From: Paraphysomonas bandaiensis
Lineage: Eukaryota; Protista; Chrysophyceae
Length of the DNA: 64,000 nucleotides
NCBI GenBank assembly: GCA_965644295.1
Contig: CBFFRP010000358.1
Coordinates: forward strand, 1-64,000
Reading direction: 5' to 3'
The notes beneath the pieces were generated by a model. It worked only from the letters and a program-made list of their open reading frames with translations, ran no database searches and had not been told where the DNA came from. The position numbers and the translations under genes are program-made. Position 1 is the first letter of the stretch. Each line of letters opens with the position of its first letter. This document shows, in pieces, positions 38,603 through 48,080 of this stretch.

Positions 38603-41088
38603 TTACTTGGACGACGAATCCGACATAGGATTGACAAGATTCTTCTTGAGGGGTAGGTCTCTCTGAATATATCCCAAGATGGCCTCATAATCAGTCTTCA
38701 AGTACCGATCATCATCCATGCGTGGTGACATGCTCGCACAGTCAACAAACATTCTGCTCAGCTCCTTGGGAATCATAAAGTTCGGTTTGTTGCTGAACCG
38801 AGTGTGGAGGGCATGTGTAGTCATCAGCAACTCAATGGCTAACATTTTCTGTACATTTTCCACAACCTACCACGTAGTTTACGTTATAAACAGTTTCGTC
38901 GAAAGAGTAGAAATATATGGGAATTACAAATTTTATATATCGGCCATATACTCTACAATGAATATTGCTACAAACCTGAACAGCCTTTCTCGCCGAAAAG
39001 CCCCCCATACTGACATGATCCTCCTTCCCAGCTCCTGTGAGGATAAATACAAATATCAACCAAGCAAATGATTAGAAAAAGTGGTACGTAGGAGAAGCAG
39101 GAGCTAAAACTAAAAAAGCAGATGCCGACTCACGTCATACAAACAGCACCAATAAACATAACCGCTATGCTACCAACACAGCTATATACAGTTACTATAT
39201 ATTACCAGAATAAAGTAACATTCACTAATACATACCTGTATTGGCCGTCTCGGCGGAAGCTGGCATAGAGAGAGTCCTGTTCTCAGCATCCAATGCCGCC
39301 TGTGCAGAGTGCAATGTTGAGAGGCTTTGTGCAAGCGTATATAGTACACAATGTACAGGAAGTATCTATCCACACATGTCAGGTGCGCGCTACTTACAGC
39401 TGTCAGTTCCCAGCACATAAACCCCGAGTTGACCCCTGGATTGTTGACTACAAAGGCTGGTAGACCTATAAGTGCATACTAAGGATTGTTAGGTCATCTT
39501 TTAAAACAACGATACCTCTATTTCTATTGGGATCAATCATTAACATACTTCTTGCAACACTAGCTCGGCCCAGTTCTCCGACATACAGAGCCAAGGTATC
39601 CAGAGCCTTCGCTGGGTACTCTCCGTGGAAGTTGCCAGCTGATATGATGCAAGGTAGCTCCGTGTTAGTAATTGGGCACAGGGCAGGGTCAAATATAAGT
39701 GGGTTATCAGTACTGGAGTTCATTTCCGTTTCCAAAGTGTGACGAATAGAAACCAGAGACTCTAGGACTGTTCCATGGATTTGAGGAACACATCTTAACA
39801 TATGATTATCAGCAAAGCGTAACCTGAGAGTGCAAGACACTACCTCAGCGAATAGAAGTCTTGTACATCCTTATCGGTTGTCGTGTGAGAGTTGGGGGGT
39901 ACGAGGCCCCTCACAATTCTCGCCACAGTGGCGGATCCAACATGTGGGCGACATTCGTGGACTCTCGCATCAAAAGCATTCATGTGGCCATTCAGGGCCA
40001 CCAAAGTCAAGGCAGCGATTGGTTGGGCAACCTATACATTCAACACGGCAGTTCCACAGAGGAATAATACATTGAGATAGTTAGATAAACAAATATGAAA
40101 TGACAGTTATAGTACCTGCGCACATATGATTCCTGCCTCCAATGCTTGAGAGCCGACACCTGTGATGAATTGGGTGCCATTTACCAAAGAAAGTCCATCC
40201 TTGGCAACAAATTTGGCGGGTTCGAGGTTGTACTCTCGTAAAACGGAGGGTGCCGGCTCAAATGCATTAGTACGAGGATTATGAATTAGTCCCTCGCCAC
40301 TCAATCCAAGGGCGATGTGAGCAAGGGGAGCCAAATCACCTACATATAATGCTGTCACGACATACAGAACTAAGGATTTCCAACATTTACGTCTGGATGA
40401 CATATTACTACCAATATCTATATTCCTTTTTTACTTCATTATGCAGACATCATTCCAATACGTTCACAAATATACTACACCAATCACATCGCTCATTTAT
40501 ACCTGACGCCCCAACTGTGCCTTGACTCGGGACTTCAGGCGTGCATCCTGTGTTAAACAAATCCACGAGTTTTTTAAATGTATCCAAGCTTACGCCACTC
40601 TTTCCTCTAGCTAGAGTATTTATACGCAAAGCCATTATTCTGCGGACAACAGATGGATGCAAAGGCTCCCCAACCCCTGATGCATGGGAACGAATTAAGT
40701 TGTGCTGTAAATCGCACAACTGAGAGTAGGAAACATTGGTGTGTGACATCAGTCCAAACCCTGTATTGATACCATATGTCGGAACCTTTGATTCAACAAT
40801 TCGGTCTACTATATCTCTTGACTGCTGAAGTCTCTGAATGGTTTCAGGAGATATGGAGAGCGGAGTACCATCTCCTAACGCAATGAGTTTCTCTATAGTC
40901 ATGGAGTTCCCGTCTACATCAATAGAGGACGAAGATTTCATTTCGTTGGGAAAAAAATTCAAAACATTTGACTGAATCATGCTCGAAATCATATCAGAAT
41001 AAGAAGACTGAGTGGCTTTAGAGACACAAAAGCTGCGCCAGGCCTTTCCCATTACTCCCCCCACCCTCTTGCTGCATCGAAACGACAT
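38603..41088 (-). CDS. HAL: Histidine ammonia-lyase, 8 exons, N-terminal mitochondrial-presequence-like extension
   Basis: YGINTGFG; His-specific LQHNLIRSH; MIO triad GTVGASG|DLAPL; NGTQ; QDFYSLRCVPQ; TDNP; GNFHG; EDHVSMG. Exons 41088-40503, 40339-40116, 40031-39844, 39793-39516, 39465-39398, 39299-39236, 39034-38976, 38866-38603. Confidence 0.95.
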
Positions 41089-41713
41089 GCTATCAAAAAT
41101 CCTCAAAAGTGTATCAAAAGTGTATCAAAATTATTTAGACGCAAAAACGACAGCTAGGAATTCTTACAAAGCTTCCTGAATAGCAGTGTAACAGTAATGA
41201 TTAATCGGTGTAGGAATAGTGACTTCAGGTGGCTGATTTTGTTGGATGTGGACACTTTAACACCTAAAAGATCCCAACAAATATCAGCCTCATATGTAAA
41301 ATACAGTGTGATACGAACTTGGAATACACAGTATGCACCATAAATCTAGAATAAATATGTTCCCACTCCTTGTCTTTGTCTATGCAGCTATGCAGGGTTA
41401 AATACATGACGTATACCACACCTTATACAGTGTAGTTGGATAGATACACACATCTCAGCTACCATATACACATATACACGTATACATGACTGAAGGAGAA
41501 CGTCATATCCAGACCAAGAATATACAGCACAGTACTGTACAGTATACTGCTCACATCTTCTACGATCGGAGTGGGTGTTCACTTTAATCTGCTCTCCAGA
41601 ATTAAGTTCCAAATCGTGATTAGCATAATTACCACACGGGATAACTGCTCTCTCCTACCCACCCTAAGAACTCTGTTTAGTGGCCACCCATTCAATTATT
41701 CATAGGTTGCAAC
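41089..41713. promoter_or_regulatory. Putative bidirectional promoter shared by HAL and HutI-HutU
   Basis: 625 bp between divergent ATGs of consecutive pathway genes; contains tandem CAAAAGTGTAT near HAL. Confidence 0.55.
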
Positions 41714-44700
41714 ATGCTGCGAAATATTCGTGTGAGCTCTGTGAAAAAGCTGCGCTGCATGCCCCTCTCCTCTATGAGGGTCGTTAATATAGGGGCTGGT
41801 GGGTACTCTTCACCTCATATTACCTCGCATCTTGTTGTTAATTTATGTAACAGTGGTAACGCCCTCAAGAGATGGCTCTACTATTGAAACTCATAAAAAC
41901 AAGGATCTTCTTATCGTTGACGGTAAGATGGCCGGCATCACTCCCTCACAGTCTACTTATTCGGAGCCTGTCTTCGACGCCAGTGGATGTCTTGCAACAC
42001 CTGGCTTTGTAGACGCCCATACTCATTTGTTTCCACCGAACGACAGAGCAGAAGAATTTGTCATTAGGTATTCCGATTACATTACACTTGTGTTGACATC
42101 ATGTGCATTGTTTTGCACGTAACATTGTGTTAAATAAATGCATCAGCATAATATTTCTTTTATTGTGAAATATAGGTCCGTGAAGTCTTATTTAGAGATA
42201 GCCAAAGAGGGTGGTGGCATTCTGTCTACTGTGAGAAGCTTCAGAAACGCGACTGTTGAACAAATTGTTGAAGCCAACAGACCCTTGATGGAACAGTTTT
42301 TTGCCCAAGGTACGCCACGCGTATGTTCACAAATTAGTTATAATAGAGGAACATGATAGTTATATCGTTAGTGTTATTGTGTAACTTACAACATCCCTGC
42401 TCAGTTGTTGTATATAAATTAATATCATGCAGTGAGTAGTAATAGTCAGAATAATATGATATCTCATTGTAAATATGGCATATATGTTCTTAAGCTAACC
42501 ATGACTGTTTATGTAGGGACAACAACAGTTGAGGTTAAGTCTGGGTATGGTCTTACCACAGCTGATGAGGTGAAGTCTCTTAAAGCTATTCAAATCCTTC
42601 AGAAAGAGTTTTCTGATAAACTCACAATAGTTCCAACCTTTATGGGTGCTCATGCTGTGCCGCCTGAATACAAGGGGAGAACAGACGAATACGTTGATTT
42701 AGTATGCAATGAAATGATTCCCGAAGTGGCGAAATTAAAACTCGCAACCTATTGTGATGTATTCTGCGAAGAAGGATATTTCAATGCCACACAAACCACC
42801 AAAGTAATATATCCTCGCTGTGTACGCTGTTGGGGTGTTTCGTCTGCATTGTGTGGAAATTTTAGCATGAATATGATTCTGCGTCATGTGGTATTCAAGA
42901 TTGCCGCAAAGAATATGCAGCATTCGTCGTTTCTTTCTCTAAATGAATTATATAACAGATTCTGGAAGCAGCTAAGGCTCATGGGATGTTGACCAGACTG
43001 CACGCTGATGAGTTCAAAGACAGTAAAGGAGCTGCTACGGCTGCGCGCATGGGATCTCACTCCGCTGATCATCTAATGGCAGTAACGGATGAAGGTACCT
43101 TATTGTGCAGTGGTTTATGTTCTCATGCAGGGCATTGGGTATGTGTGTGCTCGAGTATAGTGTACTTTGAGAAGTGATGTTGACACAAATAACAAGTTAT
43201 GTGTTGTAGGCATCGCTGCAATGAGAGATGCTGGAGTGATTCCAATCGTCTTACCTGGTGCAACTGTTTTCTTGGGAAAGGTGTTCTCCTTATTCGCTAG
43301 TTTATGGTGCTGATATTGCTTGCCATTCCTGCAGGGACATGGGTATGCTCCTATGCGGCGTATACTGGATGCTGGTGGAAGGCTAGCTATGGCTACTGAC
43401 CATAACCCTGGTTCTTCCGTACATCAGAGTATGGCGCAAATGATGCAGCTGTGTATTGCAAACGGTGGTATAACACTCTCTGAGGTATATATGTAGATAT
43501 ATATATCCTGATGTAGCTATTGGGTTGACGTCGAGCGATGTGTCTTGATAGGCTTTGATGGGAGCTACATACAATCCAGCCCTATCCCTAAACCTTAAAG
43601 ACAAAGTTGGAAGCCTGCAGGTAACTAAACATACGGTTTTAGTTGACTTTCAGTGTGTGCATGGCCTGTACAAAATGATTGTGACATTGGAGTCCTCATT
43701 GGTGATGTTGTTCACATTACGCAGGAGGGCGCGCAGGCTGACATCATTCTCTGGAACTTTGAAAGCGCATCTCAGATTCCGTATTATGGCGGCGAGAGCA
43801 GACACCGAATAGATACCGTATTTAAACATGGAAAAGCTTTCCGCAACCCTCTTCAGAACCTTTCTTGTTTACATTCGACCTCGTTTCACTCATTAAAGCC
43901 GTTACGCTCTAATGCGAGACAGTATTCTACCACCGCCAGTCGCAACCAAGAAATAGTTCTAGGAACTGTGCGAGATGTTGTATCGACAATGACTCACGAT
44001 GTCAAACTGAATGCGTCCGGGCAAATCACGGAGTGTCCGACTGAGCCAGTGAAGCTCGATCCTAGCGTTCCTCACGCACCGAAGCGATTGACACGATTAA
44101 ATGCAGAGGAGAGAGAGCTGGCCATTACGAATGCATTAAAATATTTTTCTAAGGACCTTCACTCTAAAGTGAAGCCTATATGTGAATATGAGTTGGACAC
44201 TTATGGCCATGTATATTTCTATAACCTACTGCCCTCCAAACATATATGGGCGATTCCTTTTGAAGACATTCCAGCCCAGTCACTAGAGGCCAAAGCCATG
44301 ATACATATGATTCTGAATAATTTGAACCCTGATGTCGCCCAATTTCCTCAGGTTTGCCCTGTATGCTGTATTTCCCATGATATTCTATGCTTTATTGTGT
44401 ATGACGGAATAGCGGAGCTATTGTCGTCGATATATTTTCTGCATTGTGTGATAAAGTTTGTAAACAGAGTAGATGGTCATATGTATTGCTTATTATACTT
44501 TTATCCATTTTGAGTGTTATTGCATATGTACTGAATTTTGTATTTCAGGAGCTTATTACATACGGTGGTAATGGCGCGGTTTTTTCGAACTGGGCCCAAT
44601 TTCATATCACCATACGCATGCTGAGCAAAATGAAGGCCACCCAGACCCTTTGTATGAATAGTGGCCATCCTGCAGGCCTCTTTCCTAAGTTCCCAGAAGA

Positions 44701-46860
44701 CCAAACTCCTTGGGCTGTGATCAGCAACGGCAACATGATTCCCCATTACTCCACTCCAGAGCAACTAGATAGACTGTATGCACTGGGTAAGTCGTGGGTA
44801 CTTTCAGCGTCTGATTCTCTAAGATGCGGTATCTATCTGTGACACGTATTGAAAACAGTATGTGCACATATTATTCAGTGTCAAACTTATTTTGGAACGT
44901 ATATTTATATAAGCTTTGTGTTGTCGTTTCTTTGAGTAACAGTAATATTTTTTTACTAGGGGTATCGATGTATGGACAGATGACAGCAGGTAATCGATAC
45001 TTCTCTATGATGTTCATGTTACCTGTATAGTGTGGTACCTTTATTATGTACATTTGGACGATGTTGTATTGTACTTATTCAAAGATAATCTCATTGCTGC
45101 GCTATTGTTTCAGGGTCATGGATGTATATTGGACCCCAAGGGATCGTTCATGGCACCACTCTCACTGTTGCTCAAGCTGTGGCAATGCAATCGAAGTCAA
45201 AGTCTGGGGGATGCAAAGGAAAAGTTTTCGTTACTTCTGGATTGGGGGGCATGTCAGGTGATGGCGCACTATATTCGGACCGTTATTTTAGTATCGTGAT
45301 ATCTATATACGTCCTGCATATGTTATATTCTAGAATATACAGAACAATGCTTAGATCGACTTTGTCACCGATGTATATTAGGGGCTCAGCCGAAAGCCGC
45401 CACTATAAACGGTGCTGTTTGTCTGATAGCTGAAGTCGATGAGTCCGCTTTGCGTAAGCGCCACGAGCAAGGGTGGCTGAACGAGTACTACACAGACCTT
45501 AATGATGTCCTTTCACGTGCCAAGGAGGCCCAGAATAATGGCGAATCTGTCAGTATTGGTTACCTAGGCAATGTCGTTGAGTTGTGGGAAAAGCTGGCGG
45601 AGATACCTAAACAAGATCGCTGTGAAGTGGCTATCGGGAGTGATCAGACGAGTCTTCACAACCCATATAATGGTGGATACTATCCAGTGGGACTCAGCTT
45701 CGAACAAAGTAACGAGATGATGACCTCAAAACCCGAGGAGTTCAAAAAGGCTGTTCAAGCTAGTCTGCACCGCCATTTGGCTGCTATCAACAAGCTCAGA
45801 CAGAGTGATGATTTGCTCTTTTTTGACTATGGTAATGCGTTTTTACTCGAGTGTCACAGAGCTGGCTGCCAAGTAGATCCGGAAATTCCTTCTTATGTTG
45901 AATGTATTATGGGTCCTGAGTTCTTTGATTACGGTTTTGGGCCGTATAGATGGGTATGCACTAGCGGGGATATGGATGATTTGAAAGCAACTGATGCGAT
46001 TGCGGCGAATGTGTTACAATCTCAGCTAGATGATCCCATTAATAGCAAAGTCCAACCACAGCTGAAGGCAAATTTAGATTGGATTCAGGCAGCAATGCAG
46101 AACAAACTAGTAGTTGGCAGCAAGGCGCGTATTTTATACTCCGATCTGGAAGGGAGAATTGAGTGCGCGGTGAGGATGAATGACGCTGTCGGAAAGGGCG
46201 TTCTAAAGGCTCCAGTTGTTATTGGAAGGTATTTCGCTGCAGCCCGTGATGCTTATCCAACGTTGGCAGTTTTTCAGTAGCATTGTAGAACAATTGTTGT
46301 TGTTTTCGCGCATTTTGTGTGATGCAGTTATGTATTTCTAAATTGTATATGTATAGCGTATCGTATCTGAGCCTCATATTGATTTAGGGATCATCATGAT
46401 GTCAGCGGTACCGATAGCCCTTGGCGGGAAACTGCCAATATTAAAGATGGAAGTAATCTTACTGCAGACATGTCTATCCAAAACGTTATTGGAGACGCGA
46501 TGAGGTAACTGAAATTTATAGTTTTATACGTATGCAATACGTATATCGAAGCTGTTGTGTAACTATGATATGCCGCTGCCTTGCTTACAATTGCGCTGAT
46601 GTCGATCTTGTAGAGGTGCCACATGGGTGTCTCTTCACAATGGCGGGGGTACAGGATGGGGTGTTGCGTCTAATGGAGGTTTCGGACTTGTGCTAGATGG
46701 ATCTGCTCGCGCTGAGCGCAACTGCAGGAATATGATATTCTTCGATGTGGCCAATGGGCTTACTCGGCGGGCTCGTGCTGGTAACCCTAATGCGCTACAC
46801 ACTATCAAGAAGCTTGCTGACAAGTACCCTGACTTTGAGCCATTTGTTCCTGTGATTTAG
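41714..46860 (+). CDS. Imidazolonepropionase-urocanate hydratase fusion (HutI/AMDHD1 + HutU/UROC1)
   Basis: HutI motifs: PGFVDAHTH, GGGILSTV, EVKSGYGL, DVFCEEGYF, HADE, SADHL, TDHNPGSS. Exon 43725-44351 runs without a stop from ADIILW..VFKHGK into urocanase DPSVPHAPKR. Later exons carry ELITYGG, YGQMTAGSWMYIGPQG, GLGGMSGAQP, DQTSLHN, FDYGN, GRDHHDVSG and HNGGG. All introns are GT-AG and phase-compatible. Confidence 0.92.
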
Positions 46861-48080
46861 TGGGATGCGCGTGTATGATGCATGAAGTGTCATCGCGTGT
46901 AGCATTCGCTCTGGGTAATGACCGGTAGTGTGGTAGTTTGGTGAGCAAAACACTGGTTGCCTGAATGAATTGAAATTTTAAATAATATCTTTTCTGCTAT
47001 TCCCATTAATTTTCTATTCATATAGTTTTTTTGCATTGTGGTGGATATGGAAATAAAGCCATGTAGTAGAGCCACTTTGAAGAAGACAGAATCTTAACCT
47101 AACCAACTCTCCCAAAGCAAATACATGTGTATTTTAAAACCTACTAATAGAGACATGATATATGTCCATCTTTTATACATGTTTAGCTATTTTATAATAC
47201 ACACACGAGAGGCCGACGAAGGAATAAGAACATTAAATTTTCATTTTTTCTTCTTCCGTTGTGCCCTCTATAAACAGGGATTAAATCAACTATATACTAA
47301 ATAATTATGAAAATTGAATTTTCTTTTCTTCTTCTTTTTGCTATCACCGTGGGATCGTGTGTATGTAATAAAGTACTTAAAGTGAATTCGCTTTAATTTA
47401 GTGAATTAAGATAGAAGGGCCCATAATTCCTTTGAGTACGACAACAAAATCTCTTTGAATGTGAAACCCACTCACACATTGACAGTCATGTCAGTATACA
47501 CACTGAGTTCAAGGGCTACGCGTAACGTATCGGTTTGTGTATACTTTAATCAGAAATGGTTGAGTTCACATGGACTGGGAGTATCATGAGGATGAGTGCT
47601 GTGTGTATCAATCAACAGCATTAAATTACCATCACTAGATGGAGATGCTGCAACAGTGACATCCAGAGCATTGCTGCTGTGATTGCAGTTGTGTGTTAAG
47701 GATGGGGAGTCCACCTCAGGTCCACCTTATATGCATCTATAGATAGATACAGCACCCATGTGCCTGTATTCGATGTATATCTGTTGCTACATACTACTGC
47801 AGCAGTATATGAAGAATACACCCCCATATACACGTGAAGGTTGTGGTGCTGATGCTATAACTTATACGTGGTATACAGCAGTAGCACAGTATTATGGGTG
47901 TCCGTACACGGTATACGTAATTATATGCCCTACACACTCACTATACACTATACACTGCTGTACACTGTACAGTACGGCGGTGCAGGGCTGCAGTGTTGGT
48001 ACGTGCAAGTGAAGTTGTTACTGCTACATGTCACACACCATAATAACAATACACTAAGAGCTGTACAGTAAATATCTGCC

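Follow-up and report, generated by a model that had tools for sequence, protein, structure and literature searches.

Candidate internal processing site for mitochondrial peptidases in a HutI-urocanase fusion of the chrysophyte Paraphysomonas

In the colourless chrysophyte Paraphysomonas bandaiensis, a marine flagellate, two enzymes of histidine breakdown, HutI and urocanase (HutU), are encoded by a single fused gene. The gene is located in a stretch of 64,000 nucleotides from contig CBFFRP010000358.1, which we call the window, and all positions given refer to it. Our interest is in the linker between the two enzymes. On balance, we favour the interpretation that this linker contains a presequence-like core, with a site of the type that the mitochondrial processing peptidase (MPP) and Icp55 recognize, and that an imported precursor would be cut here into two enzymes. 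This makes the Paraphysomonas fusion a candidate, judged by its sequence, for the known class of MPP-processed composite precursors. An initial annotation, made from the DNA sequence alone, had pointed to the same linker. Coordinates of the relevant features are collected in Table 1.

We conclude that the fusion is genuine and is expressed in Paraphysomonas. Transcript contigs from four studies, aligned on positions 41400-47300, contain the joints of all 14 GT..AG introns. Single spliced contigs, of 3587 and 3302 nucleotides, span 41596-46933. In the transcript contig, no ATG precedes the start codon, and an in-frame stop codon lies upstream. With exon boundaries adjusted to the cuts, none of the 15 exons is interrupted by a stop codon in its inferred phase. 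Hence, the spliced contigs place two proteins in one continuous frame of 1131 open codons on one mRNA. The linker itself contains no intron; the transcript contigs give the junction exon, which encodes the end of HutI and the start of urocanase, as a single exon with no joint inside the linker. On this evidence, we reject both an intron within the linker and two separate transcripts. Furthermore, relatives match 96-100% of the junction exon length. In Pfam searches, the window exons matched the Rossmann-like (4.8e-45) and C-terminal (1.8e-29) domains of urocanase. The match of Urocanase_N to the short end of the junction exon (6.7e-4, 19.9 bits) is under the 23.2-bit cut-off, and exon 2 has a weak match to Amidohydro_3. 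All three urocanase domains are recorded for P0200, a Paraphysomonas protein from MMETSP1103. Amidohydro_1 and Amidohydro_3 are also recorded for P0200, and were scored for a second chrysophyte fusion, P0197. Note that P0200, without the first 53 residues, was the database protein used for all full-length protein work. It has the same junction, with serine in place of cysteine at linker residue 11. A stand-alone urocanase elsewhere was considered and dropped, as no second urocanase was found in the 62.6 Mb genome.

The first half of the linker is a run of 38 residues with no aspartate, glutamate, or methionine, which includes seven serines, five leucines, four arginines, and one lysine. The initial annotation had described it as free of acidic residues and methionine, rich in serine, arginine, and leucine, and containing R-Q-Y-S-T. 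This is exactly what the DNA encodes, on the forward strand, in an open frame that begins in the C-terminus of HutI and continues into the N-terminus of urocanase. The R-Q-Y-S-T sequence places an arginine at position -2 of the junction, an aromatic residue at +1, and a small hydroxyl residue next, and so matches the MPP consensus. MPP is predicted to cut after the glutamine, between 43922 and 43923. Icp55 is then predicted to remove the tyrosine, so that urocanase would start at the serine encoded from 43926. The complete interdomain stretch, from the end of HutI to the conserved VPHAP of urocanase, is longer than these 38 residues, at about 78 amino acids. The second half contains acidic residues, is conserved, and is ordered. 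As a separate observation, an N-P-x3-L-x2-[LM]-H signature (about 43845-43877) directly follows the end of HutI. Almost every eukaryotic fusion retains it, even where the arginine motif is lacking, whereas it is absent from ciliate stand-alone HutI and from bacterial fusions.

There is a precedent for such an arrangement. Yeast Arg5,6 contains a presequence-like stretch with an R-S-Y at which MPP cuts internally, and Icp55 is predicted to trim one residue. The Paraphysomonas linker, with R-x-aromatic-S/T behind an acid-poor basic stretch, has the form that is cleaved in Arg5,6. The initial annotation had drawn this parallel, treating R-x-Y/S as an MPP/Icp55-type site and citing Arg5,6. If the same mechanism operates, the 1131-residue precursor would enter mitochondria by means of a short basic N-terminal extension. 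In the matrix, MPP would take off this extension and would also cleave the linker after the R-Q of R-Q-Y-S-T, where Icp55 would trim the tyrosine. The products would be HutI, with a length of about 430 residues, and urocanase, with about 680, the latter starting S-T-T and retaining its conserved N-terminal extension. We infer mitochondrial import, and both cleavages, from sequence. As expected, genes for M16 peptidases and of the aminopeptidase-P type (AMP_N) are present in the genome.

The composition of the linker is only partly special, and so we turned to comparison for evidence. Word searches, first with the junction exon and later with an alignment of it, yielded relatives, both fragments and whole proteins, that are 44-60% identical across the end of HutI, the linker, and the beginning of urocanase. 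Full-length fusions of 1026-1178 residues came from a representative search and from a region search with a chrysophyte protein; one of them is from EukProt ('Chrysophyte H1'). In the genomic contigs L001, L004/L005, and L006 the order is HutI then HutU, as in the window. Of the 22 fusion linkers in the junction alignment, 15 have the motif R-x-[Y/F]-[S/H]-[S/T], at 28-42 residues past the HutI end. Conservation in orthologues is one of the points on which the initial annotation had staked its proposal, and here the proposal survives. When the Paraphysomonas linker was shuffled, R-x-[YF]-[SH]-[ST] appeared in 0.8% of cases, and shuffles of each fusion linker produced the motif in at most 2.3% of trials. 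For 12 of the 15 motif linkers, the 20 residues before the arginine hold no more than one acidic residue, between one and four lysines or arginines, and mostly many serines or threonines. The arginine column is kept in 16 of 20 sequences and is among the four best-kept columns of the linker; most others are kept in 4-9 of the 20 and contain indels. Judged by these shuffles and alignments, the motif is beyond chance.

Some individual relatives deserve comment. P0203 was considered as a stand-alone stramenopile urocanase, but its contig has the C-terminus of HutI ahead of the urocanase in the same frame; P0203 is thus a fusion and is one of the 15. Two related fusions, P0006 and P0008, have no motif arginine, and their shorter linkers have gained acidic residues. 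Since their close relative P0203 retains R-S-F-S-T, the change looks like a recent loss. P0202, a partial NCBI sequence named Symbiodinium microadriaticum Uroc1, begins with a HutI C-terminus, has R-S-F-S-T in the linker, and is 78% identical to Paraphysomonas in the urocanase part. Hence, it is a partial HutI-HutU fusion, and may be a chrysophyte sequence within a dinoflagellate assembly.

Four short 'proteins', each starting with methionine just upstream of an aligned R-x-F-S/T, come from contigs in which TAA and TAG encode glutamine. On account of this code, we take the contigs to be ciliate. In L009, an intron-free HutI gene ends at TGA and, 37 nucleotides later, an intron-free urocanase gene of about 680 residues follows in another frame, itself closed upstream by TGA. 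HAL, encoding histidine ammonia-lyase, is divergent upstream. The HutI and HutU frames are separate and co-oriented, with spacers of 37 (L009/L010), 292 (L011), and 40 (L012) nucleotides. Urocanase starts in L009/L010, L011, L012, and L013 are short and basic, and begin M-L. In all four ciliate N-termini, R-x-F-[ST] occurs 6-24 residues from the start, aligned with the linker motif, and is followed by the same conserved extension as in the fusions. In position, therefore, the linker motif is the homologue of an N-terminal, presequence-like segment with which a separately encoded urocanase begins in the same gene neighbourhood. Joining of the ciliate genes by a frameshift or tiny intron is unlikely, because TGA closes both frames and both L009 genes lack introns. 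Moreover, the only GT..AG pair between HutI and HutU that fits the frame, of 64-67 nucleotides, would remove the start codon. To summarize the comparison, ciliates share with the fusion the order and orientation of the genes, and a urocanase N-terminus homologous to the motif and the extension downstream. They differ in having two reading frames, a TGA stop codon, and 37-292 nucleotides between the genes, and so the presequence-like part is truly N-terminal. Note that the intervals between the HutI TGA and the urocanase ATG (L009:3097-3134, L012:233-276, and L011:91-386) are short spacers for expression of a downstream gene.

Internal processing of Arg5,6 requires the N-terminal presequence, and its fusion homologues share the junction signal. 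An internal MPP site is therefore expected to co-occur with an N-terminal extension. The fusion in the window has such an extension ahead of the first HutI strand (Table 1). Likewise, L001, L004, and L006 encode acid-free basic N-terminal extensions of 17-20 residues, two of the three with R-S-L-[AS], and the partial sequence P0199 has, in part, the same kind of end. Conversely, P0197, P0198, and P0038, which are 'H-type' chrysophyte fusions that lack the motif, begin only 3-8 residues before the first strand; for P0197, an in-frame stop codon is found four codons upstream of the ATG. Two further motif-less fusions have acidic N-termini: P0204, from a bacterial gene context, and P0206, a triple fusion of HAL, HutI, and HutU. 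Hence, motif fusions with a known start have an extension of 17-20 residues and three motif-less lineages, one of them bacterial, do not.

These comparisons also bear on whether the protein enters mitochondria at all. A cytosolic fusion with a flexible linker can be envisaged, in which the motif is retained by shared descent or for another role, for example phosphorylation at R-x-x-S. The animal histidine pathway is cytosolic, the N-terminal extension is just 20 residues, and acid-free composition is not unique to one part of the protein. However, the N-terminal extensions of both the fusion and HAL are basic and acid-free in several relatives, and the motif stays constant although adjacent linker columns vary and carry indels. 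Furthermore, the motif aligns with the extreme N-termini of ciliate urocanases, where neither a kinase site nor a linker role makes much sense. We consider a cytosolic location improbable.

Next, we consider the structural context of the site. An AlphaFold model of P0200, built with a 30-row alignment, has a mean predicted local distance difference test (pLDDT) score of 78.9. The model shows the first part of the linker as a weak helix, with disorder in the segment after it, and R-Q-Y-S-T falls in the block with the lowest confidence (mean pLDDT 31). The prediction is thus of an exposed site, and gives the aromatic residue no role as a packing anchor. The first helix of the conserved urocanase extension (residues 411-419) has a pLDDT of about 91, with residues 441-450 less confident. 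The hydrophobic moment at the linker is 0.60, between the 90th (0.49) and 99th (0.66) percentiles of the protein. We also considered that a basic-x-aromatic sequence might be an old structural anchor common to bacteria. The case is weak; the equivalent sequences are K-P-F in P0204 and, in an acidic context, S-P-F in the bacterial contig L017, and the motif is disordered in the model.

Several observations weigh against cleavage at the linker. First, the acid-free run at this position, of 45 amino acids, is exceeded by two others in the protein, of 48 and 47, both within the folded urocanase part. Similarly, a scan for 20-residue windows with no acidic residue and at least four lysines or arginines picks out not just the linker but also three windows that belong to folded domains. 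Because longer acid-free runs sit in folded parts, we do not use acid-free composition as evidence by itself. Second, R-x-x-S is also a consensus for basophilic kinases. Third, the link between N-terminal extension and motif is drawn from few independent lineages, and the extension in the window is short (20 amino acids), with a cleavage motif of its own that is not canonical. Finally, fusions of an uncut type exist and are evidently functional: the bacterial P0204/L017, the H-type chrysophyte fusions with no presequence, and P0006/P0008 with no arginine. Therefore, separation is not needed for catalysis and cleavage is not obligatory for function.

With this in mind, the fusion could be imported and remain uncut, the linker being a relic, or an internal presequence-like element that keeps a long precursor competent for import. 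Uncut fusions of the same enzymes, in bacteria and in motif-less lineages, are consistent with this, as is the behaviour of Arg5,6, where internal presequence-like stretches can target uncleaved in a context-dependent manner. In addition, a linker of about 78 amino acids is long enough for two dimeric enzymes to fold tethered. What is conserved, however, goes beyond basic composition and is a cleavage-type motif of arginine, aromatic, and serine or threonine. This motif decays where the N-terminal extension is missing. We regard import without cleavage as possible, though not probable. Production of two proteins without any proteolysis is very improbable. This would need an internal start of transcription or translation, generating a stand-alone urocanase for which the linker is an N-terminal presequence, much as the ciliate urocanase frame begins at the homologous place. 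Against this, the 38 residues contain no methionine and the first methionine downstream is not conserved in relatives. Also, every transcript contig that covers the junction extends into the HutI exons, though contigs cannot show RNA starts. Processing of an imported precursor at the linker remains the interpretation we prefer.

We then asked how the linker signal arose. In a quick maximum-likelihood tree of the urocanase part, all chrysophyte-type fusions form a clade (support 99), to which the ciliate sequence is sister (support 91). The bacterial fusion P0204, and the fusion P0043, are outside chrysophytes and ciliates, in a branching order that is not separated, within one clade (99). P0204 has a copy, 78% identical, in a metagenome-assembled genome of Gammaproteobacteria (L017), where HAL is divergent upstream; the linker of P0204/L017 is acidic and has no motif. 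This bacterial fusion, the nearest outgroup in the tree, resembles that of Paraphysomonas in domain order, in the conserved N-terminal extension of urocanase, and in the head-to-head HAL gene. It differs in the acidic linker without R-aromatic-S/T, in having no basic N-terminal extension, and in the fusion of HAL to an arginase-family domain. The HAL fusion is encoded at L017:1-2718 on the reverse strand, divergent from HutI-HutU, and the added domain is probably a formiminoglutamase; thus, two head-to-head fusion genes encode the whole pathway. The triple fusion P0206 is placed elsewhere in the tree, which indicates that Hut genes were fused more than once. Encoded by a Logan contig, P0206 has 1774 residues, with HAL at 43-513, the HutI amidohydrolase at 683-1002, and three urocanase domains at 1175-1744. 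Hence, the first three steps of histidine breakdown are in one frame, with a urocanase that branches apart from the chrysophyte fusions.

Since the nearest outgroups are themselves HutI-HutU fusions, the internal presequence may have arisen within an inherited fusion, a gene that ciliates later split at this point. Consequently, two histories fit about equally. Either separate neighbours, each bearing a presequence, were fused in chrysophytes, or an inherited fusion gained an internal presequence and was split afterwards in ciliates. The initial annotation held the linker to be the relic presequence of a formerly separate urocanase. The alignment with separate ciliate urocanase starts, in the same gene order, agrees with that claim; the fused state of the nearest outgroups reduces it to one of two readings. 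In both histories, the motif is a presequence-type processing signal, and neither proves present use. A more detailed version of the second history, which we put forward tentatively and think unlikely as a whole, is that a bacterial-type HutI-HutU gene, already fused, was acquired with its head-to-head HAL. An MPP-cleaved internal presequence would then have been gained in the common ancestor of chrysophytes and ciliates, and the ciliate gene would have split at the linker. The split would be possible since, by then, an import signal would already be part of the downstream half. If so, polyprotein processing would be a stepping stone to gene fission.

The closest known systems are Arg5,6 and arg-6 of Neurospora, where acetylglutamate kinase and acetylglutamyl-phosphate reductase, two consecutive enzymes of one pathway, are made as one precursor, as here. 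The arrangement is also alike in form: an N-terminal presequence, which in Paraphysomonas is a predicted one, an internal presequence-like stretch ending R-x-aromatic, and Icp55-type trimming, for Paraphysomonas likewise predicted from sequence. In both cases, the gene pair is adjacent in bacteria. The differences are that the Paraphysomonas fusion belongs to histidine catabolism and to a chrysophyte stramenopile, that its order is reversed with respect to the pathway (step 3 before step 2), and that the related bacterial gene is already fused. Moreover, this form of motif was shown to be cleaved in Arg5,6, whereas in Paraphysomonas its cleavage is predicted. Other composite precursors, namely Atp25, Etp1 and Rsm22-Cox11 of S. 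pombe, and the rice RPS14 fusion, also have junctions with presequence-like stretches and MPP motifs. In contrast to the Paraphysomonas case, few of them pair enzymes that follow one another in a pathway, and Hut enzymes are not among the partners. Animal UROC1 and AMDHD1 are from the same enzyme families but are encoded by separate genes, are regarded as cytosolic, and have no presequence-like segment. The eukaryote-type start of UROC1 is at VPHAP, as in the fusion. The stand-alone urocanases P0207-P0214, of which P0214 is from a Tara record, have just 8-35 residues before VPHAP. Our literature searches found no paper on this HutI-HutU fusion, and nothing relevant on ciliate mitochondrial proteomes that list Hut enzymes.

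Mitochondrial polyproteins that are processed internally are known in just a few instances, from fungi and plants. If our interpretation is right, the Paraphysomonas fusion would be the first candidate in stramenopiles, and one in which two successive enzymes of histidine catabolism are joined. The series available for comparison has unusually few gaps: bacterial fusions, ciliate genes that keep the order but are unfused, and two kinds of chrysophyte fusion, those with the motif and those with neither extension nor motif. As such, it is a natural experiment on targeting signals during the fusion or splitting of genes. For bacterivorous flagellates and ciliates, histidine breakdown would also then be a mitochondrial process, which bears on how these grazers recycle amino-acid nitrogen.

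Table 1. Positions in the window of the fusion gene, its linker, and neighbouring features
Feature	Position	Strand	Basis or detail
Coding sequence of the HutI-HutU fusion	41714..46860	+	15 exons, 14 GT..AG introns, 3396 coding nucleotides, 1131 codons
N-terminal extension before first HutI strand; predicted mitochondrial presequence	41714..41773	+	20 residues, no D/E, five K/R; relatives similar
Junction exon (exon 9): HutI C-terminus, linker, and N-terminal part of urocanase	43725..44351	+	209 codons, 627 nucleotides
Acid-free S/R/L-rich stretch of 38 residues; presequence-like first half of interdomain linker	43836..43949	+	translation, relatives, model
Strain difference, T>A; linker residue 11 Cys to Ser	43866	+	three of four transcript runs; P0200 also Ser
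R-Q-Y-S-T, site of MPP R-2 / Icp55 (R-3) type; linker residues 28-32	43917..43931	+	conserved motif
Conserved N-terminal extension of mature urocanase, up to VPHAP	43950..44069	+	kept in fusions, ciliate urocanases, and bacterial fusions
First exon of histidine ammonia-lyase (HAL), divergent from fusion gene	40450..41088	-	Pfam Lyase_aromatic

The remainder of the pathway was also considered. No match to the formiminotransferase domain FTCD_N was found in the genome, and several arginase-family genes are on other contigs (C19, C362, C373, C69, and C120). Therefore, the last enzyme of histidine breakdown is not encoded in this cluster. Two further aromatic-lyase loci are on C257 and C426. Beside the fusion gene, the head-to-head arrangement of HAL with HutI/HutU recurs in L001, L006, the ciliate L009, and the bacterial L017. 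From the ATG at 41088, the first 30 or so residues of the window HAL are basic and acid-free, and contain R-S-F. The HAL protein of L006 likewise begins with a basic, acid-free sequence.

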